The notes beneath the pieces were generated by a model. It did not search any database. It was not told the DNA's origin and saw nothing but the letters and a program-made list of their open reading frames with translations. The position numbers were made by a program, and so were the translations under genes. From the sequence record PV740454.1: 64,000 bases of DNA, one strand, 5' to 3'. Within the stretch, counting starts at the first letter, position 1. Each line of letters begins with the position of its first letter. Shown in pieces: positions 4,277 to 63,548 of this stretch.

Positions 4277-4624
4277 ACAGATTTACGCACAGCACAAACT
4301 TTAGTAGAACAGAACGACGCAGCTATCGTTATTCAACAAGAATATCGCAATGCTCTTTCATTTGCATATGGCTGCATGACTGGTGTTCAGCGTCAGGTGT
4401 ATCGCGACTTTCATATGAAAGTGTTAGTAGAGCGATTTGATACAGAGTACTGCCACTCAAACGAAGTGATTCTTCCGTACGGTGAATTGAAATCAGCAAT
4501 CAAGTACATCAAAGATAGCTTGAACGAGATTGACTACGCAGAACTCAAAGAACACTTTCAATTTAACATTCACGTAGCGAAGGATCAACATGAAACGATT
4601 GAAGAAACACATACGCAAGTATGA
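4274..4624 (+). CDS. hypothetical protein
   Basis: Start set at cassette ATG 4274. Confidence 0.75.
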   Translation: MTDLRTAQTLVEQNDAAIVIQQEYRNALSFAYGCMTGVQRQVYRDFHMKVLVERFDTEYCHSNEVILPYGELKSAIKYIKDSLNEIDYAELKEHFQFNIHVAKDQHETIEETHTQV

Positions 4625-5276
4625 TGAACATGGCGTAGTACAGTATAATATGCTATTGATATTCGCTTTGATTATATCAATATCTACGTCAATAGCATTT
4701 ATCGCTGCAAACTTTCTATTTTACTTCGAAATGCAAGATCCACTTGCAAATATTCGAACATACGGTGATGCGTTTTGGACTGTATGGATGGCAATGAGTA
4801 CTATCGGGTTTGGTGATCATTATCCTGTCACTGAAGGTGGTAGATACATCATCGGGTGTATGTTTGTTGTTGGCGCATCACTGATTGGTTTGAACATTGG
4901 TATTGTCAACGGTTGGATTTCATCGAAGTTCGATAAAAGCATTCAAAATCGAGTGTTGAAGAGTCAAAATGACGCTCTATTGCAGAAACTTGACCGACTT
5001 GAGACGTTCTTGGGTGTTAATCAAGAAGTTTTGTTCGATAAAGATGCACACGGGGTTGATACGTTCATCGATCAGTATTATGATAGTAACGAATCGGCAG
5101 ATAGAATTGTAACTCTTGGTCAAGACGACAGCGGTCGATATGTAGTTGCAGTCAATCAGCAAGTACGCGACACGCAGAAGACATCATTGAAGTGGCATAC
5201 GTTCATTTCAAAAAATGATGCGCTTAAATTCTACAAAGACACAAGTGAGCTATTTCACACGGAGATATTTTCATGA
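4590..5276 (+). CDS. KcsA-type two-TM potassium channel
   Basis: TM1, pore helix (YGDAFWTVWMAMS), selectivity filter TIGFGD, YPVTEGGR, TM2, C-terminal helical bundle. Confidence 0.9.
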   Translation: MKRLKKHIRKYDEHGVVQYNMLLIFALIISISTSIAFIAANFLFYFEMQDPLANIRTYGDAFWTVWMAMSTIGFGDHYPVTEGGRYIIGCMFVVGASLIGLNIGIVNGWISSKFDKSIQNRVLKSQNDALLQKLDRLETFLGVNQEVLFDKDAHGVDTFIDQYYDSNESADRIVTLGQDDSGRYVVAVNQQVRDTQKTSLKWHTFISKNDALKFYKDTSELFHTEIFS

Positions 5277-5845
5277 AACGACTAATTTTCGCAGCACTTG
5301 CAGCACTTGCGTTGTCTGCATGTGATAACAAATCAGCAACGCTAGACACAAATGCATATTATGCAGAGCAAGAACAGCCGACTGTTGCAGCGCCTACAGT
5401 TGAAGACTTTCAACCAATTGAAGTCGAAGCACCACAAGTAGTGCAACAGCAACCGCCAGTGATCATTCAACAAGATGATGGTGGGTTTGATTTAGGTTCT
5501 GCTGCGATTGGCTTCGTTGCGGCTGAAGTGCTAGATGAAGTTGGTGATGCGTTCGAGACGAAGCATAAGAAGACGTACGTCGCACCTGTTAACAATTATC
5601 CAGTCGTTAAGCGCGTTGATCCTCAGAAATCGATGATTAAGATTGATAAGAGCGTTACTAAGCCAACAATTGTGAAGAAAGTTGAGCCTAAGCCTGTTAT
5701 CAAGAAGATAACACCAATCAAGCCGAAGAAAGTCGAGAAGGTTGGGGTTGCTCCGAAGAAAGAGCGAAAGATTGAGAAGCGAACTACTAAGCCGCCCAAG
5801 AAGAGTATTTTCAAGAAGTTTAAGTCAAGTAAAAAGCGTCGATAA
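5273..5845 (+). CDS. lipoprotein with Lys/Pro-rich basic C-terminal tail
   Basis: Lipobox LSAC; low-complexity K-rich C-terminal third; ATGA overlap with channel gene. Confidence 0.75.
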   Translation: MKRLIFAALAALALSACDNKSATLDTNAYYAEQEQPTVAAPTVEDFQPIEVEAPQVVQQQPPVIIQQDDGGFDLGSAAIGFVAAEVLDEVGDAFETKHKKTYVAPVNNYPVVKRVDPQKSMIKIDKSVTKPTIVKKVEPKPVIKKITPIKPKKVEKVGVAPKKERKIEKRTTKPPKKSIFKKFKSSKKRR

Positions 5846-5863
5846 AGAGGCATTGCCTCTTTA
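5843..5863. terminator. bidirectional hairpin terminator between convergent genes
   Basis: TAAAGAGGC-ATT-GCCTCTTTA. Confidence 0.6.
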
Positions 5864-6379
5864 TGATTCAAGAGCATTGAGCACAGCTTGAAGCTCAGTA
5901 GCTAACTTAGTCATTTCGGTGCGGTATTTTTGACTCTGACGAATATCTGTTCTTAATGCACCACGTGATGTTTTAATGTCTGCATCATAATCGGTTGCAA
6001 AGAGTAATGATTCAGTCAAATGAATCGCTCGATTTAAGTCGATAGTCAGTTCGCGTAGTTCGGTATTGCTTATCTTCTCTGCTGGGATTCGCATGTACTT
6101 GTCGATTCGTTTCATGACTTGCTTTAGTTCTTTGAAGTGTTGACGTGCTTTACCTCCAGCGAACAGAGAACCATGAACTAGACCACCAAGACCACCTGCG
6201 ATACCACCCCAGATTGCCATTGGCAACACTAATGCAGGGCCAATGAACGTAACAATTGACGCAAATGTGCCAGCAGCAACAGCACCAGCAAGTGCAGAAC
6301 GCTTAGCCCATTGAGTGATTGTTGCTTCATTCAACGACTTTGATGCTTTATATTCATCAAATGTTTTAATCTTCATCAT
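5861..6379 (-). CDS. late-expressed putative internal head protein
   Basis: N-terminus MKIKTFDEY...LNE|A resembles T4 capsid-targeting/gp21 cleavage leader; CTAAATA late-type promoter upstream; Gly/Ala hydrophobic hairpin. Confidence 0.6.
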   Translation of the reverse strand: MMKIKTFDEYKASKSLNEATITQWAKRSALAGAVAAGTFASIVTFIGPALVLPMAIWGGIAGGLGGLVHGSLFAGGKARQHFKELKQVMKRIDKYMRIPAEKISNTELRELTIDLNRAIHLTESLLFATDYDADIKTSRGALRTDIRQSQKYRTEMTKLATELQAVLNALES

Positions 6380-6406
6380 TATGCCTTATAATTGATTTAA
6401 AAGAAT

Positions 6407-6475
6407 ATGAGGGGTGCGACTATAGTAGGACCAATACTCGCAGTGACCAATGCGTAACATAGTCACATCCCTCAT
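6407..6475 (-). ncRNA. putative structured RNA (three-way junction) in late 5' leader
   Basis: 17-bp closing stem 6407-6423/6459-6475 enclosing two 4-bp hairpins whose loops share a motif (UUGGUC on minus strand). Confidence 0.5.
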
Positions 6476-6479
6476 CTAT

Positions 6480-6486
6480 TATTTAG
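6480..6486 (-). promoter_or_regulatory. T4-type late promoter variant
   Basis: CTAAATA on minus strand. Confidence 0.5.
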
Positions 6487-6617
6487 TGATACAACACTCA
6501 ATGTTTTACACTTTTCTGACAATAAAATTAAAGTAATTGTTGTGTAAAGTGTAATTTTTAATAACTACATGCGTAAAATTAATTGAACGCTTAAAAAGTA
6601 TACAAAAGGACTATCAA

Positions 6618-7034
6618 ATGACTATGAAATCAATCATGCGTGCTGTAAACACACGAGCATCTGAGCTAAAAATCTTCCGACGTGAGCACAGCACTGTTGT
6701 TGCGGGAACAGTTGCTAGTGGTAAGAACGCTATGCTAATGGGAATGATTGTTCAGCGCGGTGCAAAAGACTGTACGATGATCGTTACTGAATCAAATGCA
6801 TTCGAAATGGCAAGTAAGCTCGGTGATGGTTCATACGTAGTTCGCGGCGGGTTGAGTCTTGAATCTCTAGTTAAATCAGTATCATATGCATGTGCTCAAG
6901 ATCGCGAACACATCTTTATTGAGCAAGTGAACTTGTTTCAAGGGCATGATATCATTGAGATTCTTGAATCAATCACACAGTCATTCAACAAACAACTTTA
7001 TATTGCTGTGCAAGCACCACGAGGTGGTCTATGA
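6618..7034 (+). CDS. degenerate P-loop NTPase-like protein
   Basis: VVAGTVASGKN Walker-A-like and HIFIEQ Walker-B-like segments. Confidence 0.4.
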   Translation: MTMKSIMRAVNTRASELKIFRREHSTVVAGTVASGKNAMLMGMIVQRGAKDCTMIVTESNAFEMASKLGDGSYVVRGGLSLESLVKSVSYACAQDREHIFIEQVNLFQGHDIIEILESITQSFNKQLYIAVQAPRGGL

Positions 7035-7258
7035 CAAACGAAGAATTATATGACACATTTCTTGTTGATTGGGTGTCAAATGCAATGTCCAGCAAACTAA
7101 GCGACGCACGCGAGAAAGGTCGTCATGGGTGGTATGACAAGAATGTGTGCTCTATTGACTATCTCTATGAGTTACGTGATACAGCACTTAAAGATAATGA
7201 TCATGTCAGTGTAATGAACTACACTGCAATGATAGCAATAAGAGAGTGTAACAAATGA
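7031..7258 (+). CDS. hypothetical protein
   Basis: Overlap-coupled; KL..AREKGR.GW motif. Confidence 0.7.
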   Translation: MTNEELYDTFLVDWVSNAMSSKLSDAREKGRHGWYDKNVCSIDYLYELRDTALKDNDHVSVMNYTAMIAIRECNK

Positions 7259-8268
7259 ATGTGATGTTCACGAGTCTATTTGGCTCAAAGTTATATGGCA
7301 CAGACACACCAGAGTCAGACACTGACTATAAAGCTGTGTTTATGCCTGAAATGCGTAAGCTATTGCGCGGCGTTGCAATCAAAAACTCAGTCCATTCAAC
7401 TGGCAAGTCATTCTCGAAGAATGGCGCAGATGACGAAGACTTTGAATACATACCAGTTCAAGTGTTCATGCGCGACTTTCTTGGTGGGCAGTCGTATGCA
7501 ATCGAGCTTGCATTCAATGCATTACAGAACAAAGATGATTGCTCACCTCAGTTCTACAACATGTGTGAGCAGCTAACAACACGCTTCTTGACATCAAACG
7601 TCAAAGCAATGACTGGCTATGCGCTTAACCAAGCACAAAAGTACGGCATCAAAGGCACACGCCTTAACAGTCTTATGGAATTTGCACGTGCTGTAGAGAC
7701 GCACAACGTCGATTCTAAAGCTAAGTTAGGCTCAAGCCCTGAGTTGTGCAAACAACTTTGGGAACTGTGCTCAGAAGACGCTCACGTGCGTTTTCAGTGG
7801 TATCATGGGCCAAAGACTACAGACGCAAGTGAATTGAAAGATCCTGCATTCAGCGTGCTTGAGAAAGTATTCGGTCTTGAAATCACGTTCGAAGAAGCGG
7901 CTGGTCGTCTTGAGAAGATGATGAGCAAGTACGGTGCTCGTGCATATCAAGCGCGTGCTGCTAGTGGTTCAGACTGGAAAGCTATATCTCATGCAATGCG
8001 TGTTATCGATCAAGCGATAGACATTCTTGAAAAAGGTAAGCTTGAGTTCCCATTACCACTTGCGTCGTTCTATCGCGACGTGAAGCAGGGCAAATACAAA
8101 TGGGAATACGTGTCTGAAGTTCTACAAGAACGACTTGAATTGCTCGAAAAGGTAAAAGAGACAACGAAGCTCCCGAATCATACACCAGATCTAGTAGAAG
8201 AATTCTACGAATGGTATGATGATTGGCTTGAAGAGTTTTACTTCCCGTGTATAATGACTTGCGAATAA
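7255..8268 (+). CDS. DNA pol-beta superfamily nucleotidyltransferase (T4 NrdC.11/RlaP-like)
   Basis: FGSKLYGTDTPESDTDYK signature; C-terminal DWKAISHAMRV. Confidence 0.8.
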   Translation: MNVMFTSLFGSKLYGTDTPESDTDYKAVFMPEMRKLLRGVAIKNSVHSTGKSFSKNGADDEDFEYIPVQVFMRDFLGGQSYAIELAFNALQNKDDCSPQFYNMCEQLTTRFLTSNVKAMTGYALNQAQKYGIKGTRLNSLMEFARAVETHNVDSKAKLGSSPELCKQLWELCSEDAHVRFQWYHGPKTTDASELKDPAFSVLEKVFGLEITFEEAAGRLEKMMSKYGARAYQARAASGSDWKAISHAMRVIDQAIDILEKGKLEFPLPLASFYRDVKQGKYKWEYVSEVLQERLELLEKVKETTKLPNHTPDLVEEFYEWYDDWLEEFYFPCIMTCE

Positions 8269-8294
8269 TGAAGTAATGCGTGGTGCTTACTAGT

Positions 8295-8302
8295 TATAAA
8301 TA
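8295..8302 (+). promoter_or_regulatory. T4 late promoter
   Basis: Perfect TATAAATA 24 nt before ORF 8327. Confidence 0.8.
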
Positions 8303-8326
8303 CGATAAACAAACTAGGAATTTAAC

Positions 8327-8680
8327 ATGAAAACATTCAATCAATTCGTTAGCGAATCATCATACACGTTCACCCCACAGTCTCAAGTTGATGAAGCTCT
8401 TCTTAAAGCAGGTCAAGAAGTATTTGGACGCATGATTCAGCCGATGTTGAGCAAGGTATATGGTGATGTTCAATTCACATTCCCAGTACCAAGCAACAAG
8501 AAAGCACCACGCGGTTGGTTCACAAAGCTAGTTGCTAGTTTGACAAAGCATTTAGGCGTACAACCTAAATACGTTGATGAAAAGCGCAAAGAAGCTGAGT
8601 TTGTAGTCGGTGAAAAAAGTATCTCAATTACTAAAACGATGACTGGTTCACCTGGCGGGTACATTCGCGATAAGTTTTAA
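8327..8680 (+). CDS. putative internal head protein with capsid-targeting sequence
   Basis: MKTFNQFVSE|S parallels T4 IP leader MKTYQEFIAE; late promoter. Confidence 0.7.
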   Translation: MKTFNQFVSESSYTFTPQSQVDEALLKAGQEVFGRMIQPMLSKVYGDVQFTFPVPSNKKAPRGWFTKLVASLTKHLGVQPKYVDEKRKEAEFVVGEKSISITKTMTGSPGGYIRDKF

Positions 8681-8694
8681 GATAAGGAAAAGCA

Positions 8695-8946
8695 ATGCAA
8701 GGTTTTAACGATTATTTCAAGAAAGGTGAAGTCAAGCTTCAAGAAACTGAACAAGAGTTTCATGAGCGCGTTGTCAAGCATCGTAAAGTAGATGATCAAC
8801 GTTACCCTGACCTATCAAGTTCTGGTCTTGAGGGACCATACACTGACTTGAATGGTAAAGTGTACTACTACGATCCACGTGAAGGGATGTACTACGACCC
8901 TGACACTGACATCTACATCACTGGTAAAGAATTACGTCTACCGTAA
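8695..8946 (+). CDS. late small protein with YYYDP/YYDP aromatic repeats, possible virion protein
   Basis: MQGFNDY...LQE leader; co-transcribed with 8327; terminator follows. Confidence 0.55.
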   Translation: MQGFNDYFKKGEVKLQETEQEFHERVVKHRKVDDQRYPDLSSSGLEGPYTDLNGKVYYYDPREGMYYDPDTDIYITGKELRLP

Positions 8947-8950
8947 CACA

Positions 8951-8973
8951 AAAGCGCCTACGGGCGCTTTTTT
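8951..8973 (+). terminator. intrinsic terminator
   Basis: AAAGCGCC-TACG-GGCGCTTTTTT. Confidence 0.85.
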
Positions 8974-8987
8974 ATTGAGAAAAATAT

Positions 8988-9428
8988 ATGATTACGTTAA
9001 TACAAGACCAAAACTCTCTTCAATTCATGTTAAATGATGAACTGTTGCTATCTGCAACATGGGAATCATACATCGATCAAAACTATAACTGCGAAGTATT
9101 CAAGACTGCTATCGTCGAAATACCTTCTCTATCATGCACTATCGTGCGTGAAGAACATTATGCAGAATCACTTATTCGAACGCTTCTAATGCAACGTGAG
9201 CTTTATCACGACGACTTCCACACGATTATTGACTTATTCCCTCACGTTAAGCTTGAACAAGAGCACAATGATTGGTATTGTGACTGTTGTGGGGGTGTAC
9301 ATGATGTCTGCACAACAATCACAAACAATCAAAGTAACAAACAGTTAGATTTTTTCCACGATGACCACTTTGGTCGCGGCAATTCGATCATGCCGCATCA
9401 ATTACTTGAGTTCTGTCTAGATGTTTAA
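8988..9428 (+). CDS. hypothetical protein, possible metal-binding (CDCCG, HDDH)
   Basis: ORF tiling. Confidence 0.65.
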   Translation: MITLIQDQNSLQFMLNDELLLSATWESYIDQNYNCEVFKTAIVEIPSLSCTIVREEHYAESLIRTLLMQRELYHDDFHTIIDLFPHVKLEQEHNDWYCDCCGGVHDVCTTITNNQSNKQLDFFHDDHFGRGNSIMPHQLLEFCLDV

Positions 9429-16630: not shown

Positions 16631-16851
16631 AACCAGTCACTGAAGTACTACACGAGATTATTGTAATGGCTGAAGATATACATCAATGCGTTGTGGCAGT
16701 CGTTCACGAACGATATGAAGGGTGTTGGTACTCGATTAAAGAATGCGTGTACGATAGAGAGAAACGTCATTACGAATTGGTTGTGTACGTCGATGGTAAG
16801 AACGTCGATTGTATTGTGACTCTACACGAACTAGAAGGAAGACGCAAATGA
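16627..16851 (+). CDS. small acidic paralog family, member 1
   Basis: SIKECVYDREKRHYELV motif. Confidence 0.6.
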   Translation: MKPVTEVLHEIIVMAEDIHQCVVAVVHERYEGCWYSIKECVYDREKRHYELVVYVDGKNVDCIVTLHELEGRRK

Positions 16852-17063
16852 ATAGCGCAGCGATAATGCAAGATTACATGCAACTCAAAGAAGCATTGAT
16901 TTATATGCTCGATGATATGTTTGACGGCATGGGTCACATCGACCACATAGAGTACTTCGAAGACGAACAGATGTGGGATATTCAATACTATGATGGTAAT
17001 GAACTGCATGAAGTATCGGTAACTACTATCGCTCTTGATCATTGGATGGACAAAAACAAATGA
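16848..17063 (+). CDS. small acidic paralog family, member 2
   Basis: HIDHIEYFEDEQMWDIQ motif. Confidence 0.65.
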   Translation: MNSAAIMQDYMQLKEALIYMLDDMFDGMGHIDHIEYFEDEQMWDIQYYDGNELHEVSVTTIALDHWMDKNK

Positions 17064-17251
17064 CAAACTACTGTATCTACCACGAAGAACTAAAGTCAAT
17101 CTTGGAACTGCATATCAATAACGTCATCAAAGTAACTGCTGTGTTCGGCAGTGTCGGTGATGCGTATCGTGTACTATATGATGGTGAGTTTGATAAGAAA
17201 GGGTTCGTTGTTCGCGAAATGGCACAACTACGCTTGAAGGAATCCAAATGA
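17060..17251 (+). CDS. hypothetical protein
   Basis: ATGA overlap tiling. Confidence 0.6.
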   Translation: MTNYCIYHEELKSILELHINNVIKVTAVFGSVGDAYRVLYDGEFDKKGFVVREMAQLRLKESK

Positions 17252-19301: not shown

Positions 19302-19403
19302 TGTACTGCAAAAACGCTTAGAATACCACACAGACAGGCTCAGAGCATAGTACAACACTCATTGTTTTTTAATATATCGCACCCCGGTTCGTTTTCTACA
19401 ACA

Positions 19404-19512
19404 TGTGGGTAAATCTGTGGATAATATGTGTGTGAGACTGTGCATAAGTGTCTGAGATATGTGGATAAAAACAGAAATCAACTGTGGATAAGTCTGTGGA
19501 TTACGTGGATAA
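19404..19512 (-). repeat. array of seven co-oriented DnaA boxes (candidate origin or DnaA sink)
   Basis: TGTGGATAA at 19416, 19460, 19483; TGTGCATAA 19439; one-mismatch boxes at 19404, 19495, 19504; in gene-free gap 19302-19670. Confidence 0.8.
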
Positions 19513-19670
19513 GTTTTTTGGCTAAAAATAGCAAAAGGCTCATCGGGAGTGGTGGGAATTAGAGAACATCGAAGAACATCGAAGGTGGTAAAGAACTTAC
19601 ACCATTTCTGAAAAATAATTTGACACCACTTGCGCTTATGTGAGAAGATAGCGCGGTGAGAGGAGAGAAT

Positions 19671-20195
19671 ATGAAACAATTGATATTAAAAGATCGCATG
19701 AGTTTGCGCGTGGTAGATCAAGTGCATAGAGTGCATTACCATACGTTGCGACATGAGAATCGAACTGGTATGCCGTTTAATGTTGAGTGTAAAGGTGATG
19801 ATTGTGTTGTGTGTTCGCATGTTGACGGGTTGATTGCAGCACAGAAAGGTTCAGAGGCGTGTAATTTACGAGCTAAAGTGCAATACCAAGTGCGAGTAAT
19901 CGACTTGAATGATGTATCGAGTGGTGTACAAGTGTTGTGTTTCAGTCGCACGTTGCTTGATGCCGTGACTGATGCGCTTGAAGGTTCAAACGAGCGTGAG
20001 TATCGACCACTTGAGATACGTTCATCTGAATTTGCTCGTGGGTTTCGTAGTTATAGAGATTCATTTGCTGGTAATGTTATTCGTACAGCAATTAAGATGA
20101 AATTCAAGTCAACTGAAGAGTACAAGCTACCGTTTTACATTACGCCGTATGATGCTGATGCGATTCTGCGACATTTATTGAAGGGGTTAACATGA
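19671..20195 (+). CDS. gp32-like Zn-binding OB-fold ssDNA-binding protein lacking acidic tail
   Basis: H...C...CxxC ligands; RAKVQYQVRVID, GVQVLCFSRTLLDAV, GFRSYRDSF parallel T4 gp32 KRKTSYWANILV, GKVFKYRFGKKIWDKI, GFSNYDESKF. Confidence 0.65.
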   Translation: MKQLILKDRMSLRVVDQVHRVHYHTLRHENRTGMPFNVECKGDDCVVCSHVDGLIAAQKGSEACNLRAKVQYQVRVIDLNDVSSGVQVLCFSRTLLDAVTDALEGSNEREYRPLEIRSSEFARGFRSYRDSFAGNVIRTAIKMKFKSTEEYKLPFYITPYDADAILRHLLKGLT

Positions 20196-56142: not shown

Positions 56143-56213
56143 AAAAGGGTTGACAGATGTCAGCCCTTTTTTGTATCATACTCATATTGAAAACACCCAA
56201 GGAAAACAATATG
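56143..56213 (+). promoter_or_regulatory. terminator-fused early promoter cassette
   Basis: GGGTTGAC-AGAT-GTCAGCCCTTTTTT; TATCAT; AAGGA SD. Confidence 0.8.
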
Positions 56214-56714
56214 AAAATCAAATCTATCATTCTTTTATCATCAGCTCTACTAGCATCAAACGCATATAGCGCAGAGCAAGAAATGACTCAAGAAGAACCA
56301 ATATATGCTTCAGTTGAAGTTGGTGTATTTACAAAACACCTTACAAGATCTAGAAACTATGGTGACCCGTGGAATGAAGACAATCATCTAATCGGTCTAG
56401 AAATCGGTAAAGGTGACTGGTCTGTTCATTTGTCACACTTCACAAACTCATATGACAACCCATCGACTACATTAGGCGCTAGTTACAAACTCATTAAAAA
56501 CGATGAATTTGTTATTAGCATTGCTGCTGGCATTGTTGAGGGATACACGAGAGAAGAAGCAGGTTTATGCATCAATAACAATATTTGTTTTTTTGCTGCT
56601 CCTAGTGTTCAGTACAATTACAAACTTACCGAAAACATCACAATTTCTCCTGTTGTGCGTCTGATGGGTTTGGCAATTGTTGGTAACGCTCAAGTTCGAT
56701 ACACTTTCGACTAA
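56211..56714 (+). CDS. PagP-like outer-membrane beta-barrel protein
   Basis: Signal peptide (AYS|A), alternating beta strands, KH...WNEDN...FTNSY pattern, C-terminal VRYTF beta-signal. Confidence 0.6.
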   Translation: MKIKSIILLSSALLASNAYSAEQEMTQEEPIYASVEVGVFTKHLTRSRNYGDPWNEDNHLIGLEIGKGDWSVHLSHFTNSYDNPSTTLGASYKLIKNDEFVISIAAGIVEGYTREEAGLCINNNICFFAAPSVQYNYKLTENITISPVVRLMGLAIVGNAQVRYTFD

Positions 56715-59049: not shown

Positions 59050-59757
59050 ATGAAAAAACTAATCGCAATCGCAGCAATCGCAGGTACTGTACTTCTAACT
59101 GGTTGTTCTGAAACCGTCGAAGGTACTTCGAACGAAAAACTAAGTGCAGCAGCACCAGTTATGTCTCAGCTTGAAAAAGACATGCTTGATGTAGTTGGCG
59201 GTCCGAGCTTTTTGAATCGTTACGACGCAGTTTATACAGCCATCGTTAACAAACGAATCAAGTTTGGTGAAGAGCCTGTTGCTCGTTCTGAAACTGAAGT
59301 TCCGTTCTGTGATGTCATTAATACAGTACTTGAATCTGAGAGTCAAACTGGTCTAAATCACAAGTCATACTCGTTGAACAATCAATGGACTGTTAAGTAC
59401 GGCATTACTCTGAAACAACAATGTTCACAAACGTATGCTGAACTGAAACTGGCAACTCAAGAGCAAATCGAAGCAGAGCTTGACCGCGTTGTAATTGAAG
59501 AGCAAGAGTTCAGCAAGAAAGAAATCAAAGCTGAAAAGATCATCGAAGAATCAGTTGTAATCAACGAAGACGTTCTTCTATCGCCTGAGCTAGTTCGCGA
59601 ACTGCGTGGCTCAGTTAAAGACTGCAATCGTGCTAAAGTTCGACTAATGAATGTTGTCGATGCTGGTGAAGCACTAACTACGAAGCATTACGATGAAGTA
59701 AAAGGTTTAGTTCTTCAATGCGAAATGCTCAAACTTGAAGTTGAATTAAACAAATAG
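59050..59757 (+). CDS. lipoprotein
   Basis: Lipobox LTGC. Confidence 0.75.
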   Translation: MKKLIAIAAIAGTVLLTGCSETVEGTSNEKLSAAAPVMSQLEKDMLDVVGGPSFLNRYDAVYTAIVNKRIKFGEEPVARSETEVPFCDVINTVLESESQTGLNHKSYSLNNQWTVKYGITLKQQCSQTYAELKLATQEQIEAELDRVVIEEQEFSKKEIKAEKIIEESVVINEDVLLSPELVRELRGSVKDCNRAKVRLMNVVDAGEALTTKHYDEVKGLVLQCEMLKLEVELNK

Positions 59758-59765
59758 GTACTACT

Positions 59766-60200
59766 ATGAAATACTTTATCGCAATCCTACTACTTTCACT
59801 ATCTAGCTTTTCATTTGCTGGTGATTGGTATAAACATCCGGGAACTAATACTTGGTATACCGACGCGAAGAACAAGAACGGCGTATCCATACAAGTTAAT
59901 CGAACATCTGGTATGTCGATGATTATCAAGACACCAGTGTGTGAGTTCAAAAATCAAGAGCGTGAACTAGGCCATTCAGTTGACGTTATGACTCAAATGG
60001 ATAACGAATCTCGCATCCCGATTCGTTTTGATTTTTACTGTGTTGATGTCGGTAAGCTTGGATACATAGTTCAAATGAAAGACTACAACATGTTAATGGA
60101 TATGTTCAGAGTTTCGAGCGTAATCCGAGTTGGTGAAGTTGAATTCAGCGCAATGGGTTTCAACAAAGCACTAGACGAGATTCGGAAAACGATGAAATAG
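59766..60200 (+). CDS. exported protein
   Basis: Signal peptide ending SFA; C-terminal FSAMGF..A similar to ORF 12507. Confidence 0.7.
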   Translation: MKYFIAILLLSLSSFSFAGDWYKHPGTNTWYTDAKNKNGVSIQVNRTSGMSMIIKTPVCEFKNQERELGHSVDVMTQMDNESRIPIRFDFYCVDVGKLGYIVQMKDYNMLMDMFRVSSVIRVGEVEFSAMGFNKALDEIRKTMK

Positions 60201-61123: not shown

Positions 61124-61150
61124 AAAAGGGAGCAATTTGCTCCCTTTTTT
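61124..61150. terminator. bidirectional intrinsic terminator
   Basis: AAAAGGGAGCA-ATT-TGCTCCCTTTTTT between convergent genes. Confidence 0.85.
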
Positions 61151-62204
61151 ATTTCACCATTTTAATTTGAATTCGATTATCCATGTACTTCATTTTCTGT
61201 TCGAATTCAACATCGTATTCTGGTCGATGTTCGTATTCAATTGAAAGCATCTGTTTTAGACAACGGAACAACTCATCTTTGTAGTATCCCTCATCCATTG
61301 CTTTCATCTGGTCGTACTGCTTTTTCATTGCAGCTTTGACGATTGTCGGGTCCATGAACTTCACTGACATTTCACGTGGTGCTTTCACTGTGCCAAAATC
61401 AACATACACTTGAGCTTCCATTGCAACTTGAATGAAGTCGTAAATTGTGTCATAGCTCATGCGACTTAGCGTATGATGCATCACGAGATCTTTGCAGTGA
61501 GCTTTTAGAATCGGCGCGTTACGCAACATCAAATCGTGGTCTAGATTTTGACGAATGTATTCGTTTCGTTCTTTACCACCATCACACGAAATCGTCATTG
61601 AAATGCGCTGTTTGTATTTCTTGCAGATTGCTAGTATTTTCTTGGCAAGTGGAGTGTGAAGAACTGTGCCATTTGTCAAAATGAATACGTGAGCTTTGGT
61701 CTCTTCCATCACTTCTGTTAGAACTTCGACTGTTCGTTTGTCCATGAACGGTTCACCCCCGTACAGAACAACAGTTTCAACGCCTTTTGGGATGCTGAAA
61801 TCGAGTTGGTTGTAATCGTAAGTGTCTTCAATGTCATACAGATCCATGTATGTCTTGCTATTCTTCCCGTAACACATTCTACACGCTAGATTGCACTTGT
61901 TTGACATCAGTATTTGAATGGTGCGCGGGTGCTCTTCTAGAGCTTCATACTCGAAGTATTTCTGGTCTGACAATTCACCGTAGCTCATACATTCTTTGCA
62001 GTAATCTGGTAATGTGTCATAATCGAACATTTTTGCACGATGTTCGTTGATGATATCACTGTGCCACCAATCTTCGACGTTCGGGAATGCTTCGCTTAAT
62101 TGCGAACAACAGATATGATAGCCGTCTGGTTTAGCGTCTCGTGTGTTGAAGGGAGAGCCACAAAGTGGCTTCTTCCCGTCTTTAAATCCAAATTTTTCAA
62201 ACAT
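61149..62204 (-). CDS. radical SAM protein with N-terminal Cys-rich (SPASM/twitch-like) region
   Basis: CNLACRMC, GGEPF, TNGT, SCDG; N-terminal C...CC...CKEC. Confidence 0.85.
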   Translation of the reverse strand: MFEKFGFKDGKKPLCGSPFNTRDAKPDGYHICCSQLSEAFPNVEDWWHSDIINEHRAKMFDYDTLPDYCKECMSYGELSDQKYFEYEALEEHPRTIQILMSNKCNLACRMCYGKNSKTYMDLYDIEDTYDYNQLDFSIPKGVETVVLYGGEPFMDKRTVEVLTEVMEETKAHVFILTNGTVLHTPLAKKILAICKKYKQRISMTISCDGGKERNEYIRQNLDHDLMLRNAPILKAHCKDLVMHHTLSRMSYDTIYDFIQVAMEAQVYVDFGTVKAPREMSVKFMDPTIVKAAMKKQYDQMKAMDEGYYKDELFRCLKQMLSIEYEHRPEYDVEFEQKMKYMDNRIQIKMVK

Positions 62205-62473
62205 TAATCTAACTCATCAAGTAGGGATTGAAATTCTTCGTCGCGTTCAGCGTCGATTTCATAGGTCATCATTGCTTTTAGTGTAGCAAGAGACTTGATC
62301 TCAGGTGGTCTAGGTCGTAGATCTTCTAAAATACAAATAATCGACTCTGCTGGTAAGTCATGTTCAATTATTTCTGGTGGTAGCGTGTGTTTGTAAACGC
62401 AGTTATCACCCCAGTCGATGACAACTGCGTGTTCCCATTTGTCAATCTCGACAATTTTAAAATCAGCTTTCAT
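62204..62473 (-). CDS. small acidic protein coupled between glycosyltransferase and radical SAM
   Basis: Overlapping start/stop on both sides. Confidence 0.65.
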   Translation of the reverse strand: MKADFKIVEIDKWEHAVVIDWGDNCVYKHTLPPEIIEHDLPAESIICILEDLRPRPPEIKSLATLKAMMTYEIDAERDEEFQSLLDELD

Positions 62474-63479
62474 GTTTCAATCCCCATAGTGTTTCCCAAT
62501 GTGTTTTCGTATCTTGTCGATACTTCTCAATATCAAATTTTTCGTACTGTTCGCGTGTCGCTTTCTCGATCACGTCAACGATTGTATCATTGTTTATATC
62601 TGCTCGAACAACAGGAAATATGAAATCGCGTGTATATGGTGCATCATATTGAACAATGCATGGTATATGTTGACTTGCTTCAACTACTGCATATGGCATG
62701 ATTTCGATATGAGACATGTGAAGAAGAACTTTGCTCTTCATCATGTGTGCAATCACTTCTTCGCGTGGCTTCTTAATGTGTACTTTGCAGTTAACACCTT
62801 GCGGCACGCTAACGAAATCAGTTGTGAATAGGTGGACACTCAAGTCACTGCCAACGAGAGATTTCAGCATTTCTGGTATTTGCTTTCTCTTATACGCGCC
62901 TGATACGATGATCACATCTGATTCTTTCGCGTTGTTCAACTCAGTATGCGACACTTCTGGTAGCTCAAACGGTTCGTACGCTGTGACATGATTACCACCC
63001 ATTATCTGTTCGCCCCAATAACGAATCCCATCAGATTGCGCTACGTTTGTAACAATAGCTGACTTGCCCATCATTGCTCGCCACTGATTTAAATTGTACA
63101 TTCGATTGATATCCATGTACTTCTTGTAAGAGTCTGGAACTATCAAGTCGCCGAAGTGATGCTGGTTGTAACATGCTCTATTTGCTTCTATACATGCGCG
63201 TAACGCTTCGTAAGAGTGTGTATATATGATTGTGTCGGCGCTTAGTGATTTGATTACAAGAGCGTTTGCTTTGTAGTCGTTAAATGCTCTATTCGTCAAC
63301 ACGAAATCGCAACCAAAATCCCAACTGTTCATATGCGGGCATCTGTCATCACCGAAGATGATAACCTTGACATCACAGTTGTAACTTTTCATAAGTCGAA
63401 TGTGATCTTGCAAGAATGTATAGATACCGCCACCGATGCCAAGCATGAAATCAGTGACCACGTATCGAATTTTTTTCAT
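62463..63479 (-). CDS. GT-B fold (GT4-like) glycosyltransferase
   Basis: N-terminal GGG loop; C-terminal SHIEIMPYAVVEA (ExxxxxxxE) donor-binding motif and PCIV. Confidence 0.75.
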   Translation of the reverse strand: MKKIRYVVTDFMLGIGGGIYTFLQDHIRLMKSYNCDVKVIIFGDDRCPHMNSWDFGCDFVLTNRAFNDYKANALVIKSLSADTIIYTHSYEALRACIEANRACYNQHHFGDLIVPDSYKKYMDINRMYNLNQWRAMMGKSAIVTNVAQSDGIRYWGEQIMGGNHVTAYEPFELPEVSHTELNNAKESDVIIVSGAYKRKQIPEMLKSLVGSDLSVHLFTTDFVSVPQGVNCKVHIKKPREEVIAHMMKSKVLLHMSHIEIMPYAVVEASQHIPCIVQYDAPYTRDFIFPVVRADINNDTIVDVIEKATREQYEKFDIEKYRQDTKTHWETLWGLKHES

Positions 63480-63486
63480 AAAAGTG

Positions 63487-63515
63487 TTGACTCCACGTGT
63501 CTTAATATGTAGACT
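63487..63515 (+). promoter_or_regulatory. sigma70-type promoter divergent from GT operon
   Basis: TTGACT-17-TAGACT. Confidence 0.6.
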
Positions 63516-63548
63516 ATATTTTATCGCAACAAGTACGAGATTTAAACA

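Follow-up and report, generated by a model that had tools for sequence, protein, structure and literature searches.

What does a T4-type vibriophage gain from encoding a glycosyltransferase and a radical S-adenosylmethionine (SAM) enzyme in one operon, and do the two work as a unit? The question is raised by a 64,000-nucleotide stretch of Vibrio phage CZ01 (PV740454.1; hereafter the window, in which coordinates are those of the genome), a KVP40/nt-1-like T4-type myovirus that shares 94% identity with nt-1 over the region; both phages infect Vibrio natriegens. Three minus-strand genes make up the operon: first, a glycosyltransferase of 338 residues (CZ01_145, 62463–63479; phrog_27514, PHROG E = 1e-214; orthologue KVP40.0274), then an acidic protein of 89 residues (CZ01_144, 62204–62473; phrog_15094), and last, a radical SAM enzyme of 351 residues (CZ01_143, 61149–62204; phrog_14086; orthologue KVP40.0272). 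GenBank labels CZ01_143 a radical SAM domain protein and CZ01_144 and CZ01_145 hypothetical, while Pfam matches of the orthologues KVP40.0272–0274 are already tagged in the KVP40 record. The original prediction for this locus was a two-step modification, sugar transfer followed by radical tailoring, carried out by one functional unit. Comparative evidence supports this idea, and we assign a probability of roughly 0.5 to the operon being a coupled two-enzyme module for sugar transfer and radical tailoring that is made at an early stage of infection and remains inside the infected cell instead of becoming part of the virion.

The operon is a real, conserved, and uncharacterized module. Its three open reading frames (ORFs) lie exactly where the original prediction had placed them, according to both the ORF listing and GenBank, and the overlaps behind its claim of translational coupling were found at both junctions: the glycosyltransferase gene and the small ORF share 11 nt, and the small ORF and the radical SAM gene share 1 nt, as TAATG. 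By this arrangement, the small ORF is predicted to be translationally coupled to both of its neighbors. The operon was also rightly singled out as the sole multigene minus-strand unit of the window, the remaining free-standing minus-strand ORFs of at least 100 residues outside plus-strand genes all being isolated singletons (5861–6379, 16770–17099, and 19359–19679). It is set among early genes, with nicotinamide adenine dinucleotide (NAD) salvage upstream and nrdAB downstream.

The glycosyltransferase scores below threshold against Pfam Glycos_transf_1 (PF00534; 17.1 bits versus a gathering cut-off of 26.4, E = 0.004) and found no match in an NCBIfam scan. A word-indexed search of 5.8 billion proteins returned eight clusters, all from vibriophages, and an AlphaFold (AF2) model built on these eight clusters (predicted local distance difference test score [pLDDT] 73) contains two Rossmann domains and retrieved only GT-B glycosyltransferases with Foldseek (E ∼1e-7). 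VIA-align superimposed the model on GT4 enzymes with Z-scores of 13.5 to 15.3 over 270 to 300 residues, the matches being sucrose-phosphate synthase, HepE, LmbT, MshA, PimA/PimB', BshA, WaaG, PglA, TarM, and SdgB. Distant relatives surfaced in an exhaustive profile search, word-based homology searches having given vibriophage relatives alone: among 1.8 billion protein representatives, 43 further relatives were detected (best E = 7e-19), yielding a family of 44 representatives that is almost confined to marine phages. Some distant members exceed the PF00534 threshold (P0017, 27.1 bits; P0019, 29.1 bits; here and below, P numbers denote proteins and L numbers the loci compared). Across 18 family members at ∼20% identity, G18, H108, Q148, K199, H254, E259, P262, E267, and W328 are invariant and R198 nearly so, with E259-x7-E267 forming the EX7E signature of GT4 enzymes. 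Language-model neighbors of the protein are likewise GT4 families (score 0.98), and its N-terminal acceptor domain matched no named family. Because modeled fold, EX7E motif, and language-model neighbors agree, the protein is best described as a bona fide but very divergent GT4-type GT-B enzyme, and its conserved residues make it look active. The T4 α- and β-glucosyltransferases were absent from the top 50 structural matches of the model, as anticipated by the original prediction of a GT4-like enzyme distinct from them.

The radical SAM enzyme is above threshold for Pfam Radical_SAM (PF04055; 48.9 bits versus 29.5) and aligns with model positions 2 to 382 of 398 in NCBIfam NF033640 (N_Twi_rSAM; 133.2 bits, E = 1.3e-38). 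This score is below the 170-bit cut-off of the model, which is passed by relatives adjacent to distant members of the glycosyltransferase family (202 bits in L006 and 170.2 bits in L031). Both core motifs, CX3CX2C (C104/C108/C111) and GGEP (G149-G150-E151-P152), are invariant. In the ∼90 N-terminal residues ahead of the core, C15-X12-G28-X4-C33 and then C69-X2-C72 fit the SPASM/twitch-type pattern CX9-15GX4C…CX2C; this opening portion of the signature precedes the core instead of following it. The extra N-terminal cysteine cluster noticed earlier is thus real, and its Cys positions are invariant in seven homologues at 22 to 28% identity; the Pfam SPASM model matches the N termini of bacterial relatives. 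The nearest solved structures and named families are peptide-modifying SPASM/twitch enzymes, related via the common core alone, with PapB, ScmE, GggB, YydG, and SkfB the closest named relatives by family or structure. The enzyme appears to be a divergent relative of the uncharacterized family NF033640, and conservation of CX3CX2C, GGEP, and the twitch cysteines makes it look active; a literature search found no paper on NF033640 and no known reaction for any member. With the glycosyltransferase under the Pfam threshold and the radical SAM enzyme under the NCBI cut-off, both are divergent relatives rather than filed members of their families. Assignment to prokaryotic viperin (NF038283) was rejected, since the match reached 41.5 bits versus a 180-bit cut-off and covered only the radical SAM core, and the GenBank labels viperin, QueE, MoaA, and “heme biosynthesis” likewise reflect generic core similarity, all far under their cut-offs.

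The co-conservation on which a joint function depends was found: by tblastn, all three genes occur in the same 40 phage records (40/40). In comparisons of CZ01, KVP40, and K566, the proportion of synonymous differences (pS) is ∼0.6 to 0.9, which is saturated, while that of nonsynonymous differences (pN) is 0.07 to 0.10 for the radical SAM gene, 0.12 to 0.17 for the small protein, and 0.18 to 0.20 for the glycosyltransferase. All three genes therefore appear to be under purifying selection. In a pangenome study, the orthologues VP6E351A_0337–0339 are core in 18/18 phages with dN/dS values of 0.07, 0.10, and 0.14 (PMC12028318, Table S8).

The association extends beyond this phage group. Distant glycosyltransferase relatives lie beside an N-twitch radical SAM gene in all five informative loci, a count that leaves aside two further contigs too short to judge. 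P0014, on a T4-like contig (L006), overlaps by 4 nt the end of the radical SAM gene whose product scores 202 bits on NF033640; P0016 (VPHK566_0307 of Vibrio phage K566) directly follows a radical SAM gene in an island of four N-twitch radical SAMs and two GT8 genes; P0020 (L031) has its radical SAM partner (170.2 bits) 1 nt downstream, followed by four more paralogues; and P0027 (L032) resides in an island of GT2, YdjC, and radical SAM genes, with a radical SAM gene within 3 kb. The gene order of the pair varies, and adjacency or overlap recurs in four other lineages. On L006, a 718-residue fusion (L006:4013–6169) joins an N-terminal GT8 domain to a C-terminal N-twitch radical SAM domain (NF033640, E = 1e-41). 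In a quick maximum-likelihood tree of 43 radical SAM family members, those beside distant glycosyltransferase relatives form one clade (Shimodaira–Hasegawa-like approximate likelihood ratio test [SH-aLRT] 99), and the CZ01/KVP40/K566 orthologues form a long branch inside the same 11-row group (support 94). The label “adjacent to this glycosyltransferase” required two changes on this tree, and 0/500 shuffles required as few; we regard the clustering as supporting, not decisive, evidence for linkage. Together, the 40/40 co-conservation, the five loci, the tree, and the GT8 fusion support the proposal that the two enzymes form one functional unit.

The same observations bear on the possibility that the genes are mere neighbors with unrelated functions, for example, a viperin-like or metabolic radical SAM enzyme next to an independent host-takeover glycosyltransferase. 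Such a reading draws on the radical SAM family occurring mostly without this glycosyltransferase and on a published annotation that flags a paralogue as weakly viperin-like. It is quite unlikely, given the recurrence of the pairing in four other lineages with varying gene order, the clustering in the phylogenies, the 40/40 co-occurrence, and the 41 bits obtained against the 180-bit viperin cut-off.

Signals flanking the operon are consistent with a self-contained and early transcription unit. A putative σ70/T4-early-like promoter, GTTTAA/TTTAAA-17 nt-TAAAAT, was located on the minus strand at 63518..63546 by consensus scan and inspection of the sequence, with a −35 element that overlaps the start codon of the divergent gene CZ01_146. 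The GTTTAA-17-TAAAAT spacing is kept in five phages (CZ01, KVP40, K566, 6E35.1a, and VH7D), as is a GGAG ribosome-binding site for the first gene (minus strand, 63491..63494) within an invariant GAGTCAAC. A late promoter TATAAATA was looked for upstream of the glycosyltransferase gene and none was present. At the other end, a predicted bidirectional intrinsic terminator (61124..61148, both strands) is common to the operon and the convergent plus-strand gene CZ01_142. Its hairpin folds with −20.2 kcal/mol on the minus strand and −17.9 kcal/mol on the plus strand (z ∼ −5.6 on each strand; 0/200 shuffles folded as well), is followed by a U-run on each strand, and is retained in VH7D. Both boundary elements, the divergent promoter and the bidirectional terminator, had been part of the original prediction. 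An early-type promoter in an early-gene setting is easier to reconcile with host takeover than with decoration of virions late in infection.

Several observations weigh against a coupled sugar-transfer and radical-tailoring module. The promoter class, σ70/T4-early-type, comes from consensus matching only, and the tree was obtained by a quick search and has long branches. In the VH7D/ValKK3 group, 11 records have neither enzyme, which means that the module can be dispensed with on some hosts. A search of IMG/VR with the radical SAM motif retrieved 80 loci with 343 ORFs of the family, arrayed as densely as nine per 17 kb; this glycosyltransferase family occurs in none of the loci (0/80) and a GT2 gene in nine (9/80). 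Most viral N-twitch radical SAMs are thus found in arrays without a detectable glycosyltransferase, so a tie to glycans does not hold for the family at large. On these counts, a general link between N-twitch radical SAMs and glycosyltransferases was rejected; the link runs one way, from glycosyltransferase to radical SAM. As the converse fails in the 80 loci, the glycosyltransferase is a specialized partner of one branch of a much larger radical SAM family.

The tandem arrays reflect an extensive and unexplained expansion of the gene family in marine phages and in certain bacteria. Near back-to-back paralogues, reaching nine or more, occupy the IMG/VR contigs L035:2509–15483, L044:88–16332, and L049:999–16229, and bacterial members in metagenome-assembled genomes of Bdellovibrionota (L014:2699–13328) and Chloroflexota (L018:3124–13772) lie in arrays with seven to nine radical SAM genes each. 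In KVP40, the two N-twitch paralogues KVP40.0260 and KVP40.0261 (L114:7056–9162) are additional to the operon copy and lie beside QueC-like and phosphoribosyltransferase-like genes. CZ01 has only the operon copy, so the paralogue set varies within the phage group. A metagenomic contig (L003:58–4494) has a 65-residue ORF and, after it, three N-twitch radical SAM genes and an unassigned gene of 327 residues, an arrangement with the look of a ribosomally synthesized and post-translationally modified peptide (RiPP) locus. The L006 contig also carries a phage SAM synthetase (L006:1–458), with NAD-related enzymes nearby.

The middle gene sets the CZ01 operon apart from the other loci. Pfam and NCBIfam scans assigned the 89-residue protein to no family; its relatives are limited to vibriophages of the KVP40-like group (an IMG/VR search gave KVP40 alone), and it is absent from all other glycosyltransferase–radical SAM loci. 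KVP40.0273 (L012:4711–5004) is annotated 8 codons longer at its 5' end than in the other phages, whose shared start codon, the ATG at L012:4735 in KVP40, is likelier. A low-confidence model (pLDDT 65) suggests three strands, two helices, an ill-defined linker, and an acidic C-terminal helix. Searches with this model gave Foldseek matches at E > 0.5 only and, in a wide VIA comparison, Z-scores of at most 4.0, with no RiPP recognition element (RRE) among the matches. The language-model neighbor is DUF3006 (0.88, under the 0.9 level for more than a lead).

A natural deletion variant is informative regarding this protein. At the syntenic site, the 11 records of the VH7D/ValKK3/phi-ST2 group have lost both enzymes and kept the small ORF: in VH7D, two neat deletions took out the glycosyltransferase and radical SAM genes and left a solo ORF of ∼75 residues (L002:4001–4222), unannotated in the VH7D record. 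The solo form is found likewise in ValKK3, phi-ST2, phi-Grn1, Va3, R10Z, R11Z, XZ1, and PVA23. In this group, the start codon of the small ORF now comes right after the conserved promoter and ribosome-binding site, codons 1 to 69 are intact, and a short new tail follows codon 69 before the same terminator closes the unit. Over the 69 codons, pN between VH7D and operon-bearing phages (0.13–0.17) equals that among operon-bearing phages (0.12–0.17), which suggests that the N-terminal domain is probably functional on its own. Where the enzymes are present, the C-terminal 16 residues, which include one Ser, no Thr, and no Cys, are nearly invariant, and they are lost together with the enzymes; the acidic C-terminal helix would thus be the likeliest contact of the protein to the enzymes. 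Survival of the first 69 codons alone in 11 enzyme-less records argues that the protein is not a universal substrate. Of the two roles suggested by the original prediction, substrate or adaptor, that of a lineage-specific adaptor or regulator is possible, while that of a general substrate is unlikely, given its absence elsewhere and the persistence of residues 1 to 69, equally conserved, without the enzymes.

A RiPP-like pathway would assign the small protein a more central role, either as the precursor (folded leader and acidic C-terminal core) or as a PqqD/MftB-like chaperone presenting a peptide that the radical SAM enzyme modifies and the glycosyltransferase glycosylates. The named relatives of the radical SAM enzyme are indeed SPASM/twitch peptide maturases (PapB, ScmE, GggB, YydG, and SkfB), the small protein is modeled with a β3-then-helices topology, its C-terminal helix is lost when the enzymes are, the distant homologue P0013 follows a 65-residue ORF, and mycofactocin joins MftB, MftC, and a glycosyltransferase. 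However, no RRE or PqqD match emerged by sequence or by fold (Foldseek E > 0.5, VIA Z ≤ 4.0), the protein is missing from the other glycosyltransferase–radical SAM loci, its N-terminal domain is kept alone in the VH7D group, the nearly invariant C terminus offers a single Ser and neither Thr nor Cys, and no separate precursor was identified. We consider this pathway unlikely, and likewise the small protein itself as the target of modification. The more specific assignment as an RRE/PqqD-like chaperone is kept as a minor alternative, the order of strands and helices being fitting but Pfam, Foldseek, and VIA (best Z 4.0) lending no support.

Which molecule the two enzymes would modify was approached from the surroundings of the genes and from published measurements on relatives. 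DNA bases had been named as one target, and hypermodification, in which a sugar on a phage DNA base is tailored by radical chemistry as an anti-restriction measure, has some appeal: T4-type phages classically glucosylate DNA via GT-B enzymes, early expression fits, and this phage group already makes 7-deazaguanines. However, in untargeted HPLC–mass spectrometry (high-performance liquid chromatography coupled to mass spectrometry) of digested DNA from the operon-bearing relative 6E351A, dPreQ1 was the sole noncanonical nucleoside reported, at 15% of deoxyguanosine (PMC12028318), and the T4 α- and β-glucosyltransferases are outside the top structural matches. Measurements on nt-1 DNA were aimed at 7-deazaguanines only and do not bear on sugars (PMC6884629), so a rare or site-specific adduct may exist. 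DNA is disfavored as the target, and we judge it very unlikely, both as a substrate and as the basis of an alternative account of the operon.

Glycosylation of a fibre or other phage protein, with the radical SAM enzyme tailoring the sugar or the peptide, is a weightier alternative. Adhesins are decorated by GT4 enzymes of the SdgB type, and the structural neighbors of the CZ01 glycosyltransferase include SdgB and TarM. In L007 and L031, distant glycosyltransferase relatives also come shortly after genes for tail fibres or virion structure, and their position at the end of fibre modules leaves a protein target possible. L007 (L007:31–501 and 4584–9338) has a distant glycosyltransferase relative two genes after a tail fibre with an S74 chaperone domain, and a Tad2-like anti-Thoeris gene is present on the contig. 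Against such a role, the CZ01 operon is among early genes with an early-type promoter and no TATAAATA, the adjacent genes hold no candidate acceptor, and the VH7D group has lost both enzymes. All three proteins went undetected in the virion proteome of 6E351A (PMC12028318), an absence that is expected for enzymes and that argues against the 89-residue protein as a virion component. The virion-protein target of the original prediction therefore finds no local support, and glycosylation of virion or other phage proteins as an account of the operon is doubtful.

For a module that stays in the infected cell, the gene neighborhood points elsewhere. Just upstream of the operon is an early cluster that appears envelope-directed, comprising CZ01_134 (56211–56714; PagP-like barrel), CZ01_139 (59050–59757; lipoprotein-type signal, a hydrophobic stretch followed by Cys), and CZ01_140 (59766–60200; cleavable-looking signal peptide), and the K566 island abuts LpxC, PagP, and GT8 genes. 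The host envelope is the usual hypothesis for marine T4-type phages (PMC7029224). The nearest GT4 structures include the small-molecule enzymes BshA, MshA, and LmbT, and the region has been termed the Schizotequatrovirus “anti-defence island” (PMC12028318). We tentatively place a host envelope glycolipid or polysaccharide precursor first among the candidate targets. A soluble small molecule or nucleotide-sugar, in an anti-defence or metabolic role, comes second, on a par with a phage or host protein.

On the reading that the two enzymes form a coupled sugar-transfer and radical-tailoring module, the chemistry would proceed as follows. The GT4-type retaining glycosyltransferase would move a sugar from a nucleoside diphosphate sugar to the acceptor, in the cytoplasm or at the inner membrane face. 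The radical SAM enzyme would then cleave SAM at its CX3CX2C cluster, and the resulting 5'-deoxyadenosyl radical would abstract a hydrogen from either sugar or acceptor. Electrons may leave through the N-terminal twitch cluster, the lone auxiliary cluster accepting them as happens in BtrN and anSME, in which case the most economical chemistry would be a BtrN/anSME-type two-electron oxidation or a related carbinol rearrangement. The 89-residue protein would be a KVP40-lineage add-on, with an N-terminal domain that has a function of its own and a C-terminal helix that meets the enzymes as adaptor or regulator. More speculatively, the glycosyltransferase and the N-twitch radical SAM enzyme may be the minimal unit of a widespread phage chemistry, in which an auxiliary-cluster enzyme acts on a glycosyl residue or its carrier, the radical SAM arrays elaborate the same kind of hypermodified product, and marine T4-type phages use the product to remodel the infected cell or evade defence; we hold this wider proposal only tentatively.

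Among the accessory genes of marine T4-type phages that lack an explanation, radical SAM cassettes and glycosyltransferases stand out; descriptive accounts exist for pelagimyophages (PMC7029224) and for the Schizotequatrovirus “anti-defence island” (PMC12028318). The components come from known superfamilies, and neither these genes nor the N-twitch family has a published function. With one glycosyltransferase, one radical SAM enzyme, and one small protein, the CZ01/nt-1/KVP40 operon is the gene set at its smallest. Present in cultured phages of V. natriegens, a laboratory host that grows fast, and with natural deletion variants in the VH7D/ValKK3 group, it offers a practical entry point to the chemistry of the family and a route to learning what these phages glycosylate.

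Compared with characterized systems, the CZ01 glycosyltransferase resembles the retaining GT4 enzymes (BshA, MshA, PimA, WaaG, PglA, SdgB, and sucrose-phosphate synthase) in its modeled two-Rossmann GT-B architecture, EX7E motif, Lys/Arg pair before the C-domain helix, and Gly-rich N-terminal loop, and differs from them in falling below the Pfam threshold, in an acceptor domain that matches no family, and in belonging to a family that is nearly all marine phage. With the T4 α- and β-glucosyltransferases, which glucosylate hydroxymethylcytosine, it has in common the GT-B class, a T4-type phage, and early expression (here predicted from the promoter); unlike them, it carries the GT4 EX7E signature, and no glycosylated nucleoside was reported in the DNA of the operon-bearing relative. 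The radical SAM enzyme aligns with NF033640 over its full length, with the twitch motif followed by CX3CX2C and the same conserved Cys and Gly positions, but scores below the 170-bit cut-off of that family and sits on a long separate branch of the tree.

The combination of activities also has counterparts. BtrN is a twitch radical SAM enzyme that uses one auxiliary cluster to oxidize a carbinol, in a butirosin/2-deoxystreptamine pathway that also employs the GT4 enzyme BtrM. BtrN/BtrM and anSME provide the mechanistic model adopted here, by analogy, for an auxiliary-cluster radical SAM enzyme alongside a GT4 enzyme. In BtrN and anSME, the twitch/SPASM domain is C-terminal; no specific sequence relationship was found, and the other pathway enzymes are absent from the CZ01 locus. 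Mycofactocin biosynthesis involves the chaperone MftB, the radical SAM/SPASM enzyme MftC, and the GT2 glycosyltransferase MftF, and HpnI/HpnJ carry out hopanoid tailoring, HpnJ being B12-dependent. The CZ01 operon is reminiscent of these systems in uniting a radical SAM enzyme, a small partner, and a glycosyltransferase, with sugar transfer followed by radical chemistry; unlike mycofactocin, it has no identified precursor peptide and an 89-residue protein without an RRE match. The 25 best NCBIfam models listed for the radical SAM enzyme of CZ01 include neither MftC nor HpnH, and both models give weak generic matches (<40 bits) for related radical SAMs in other loci. The CZ01 pairing would thus resemble BtrN/BtrM, MftB/MftC/MftF, and HpnI/HpnJ in logic only, with a GT4-type glycosyltransferase and an N-twitch radical SAM enzyme in the corresponding places.

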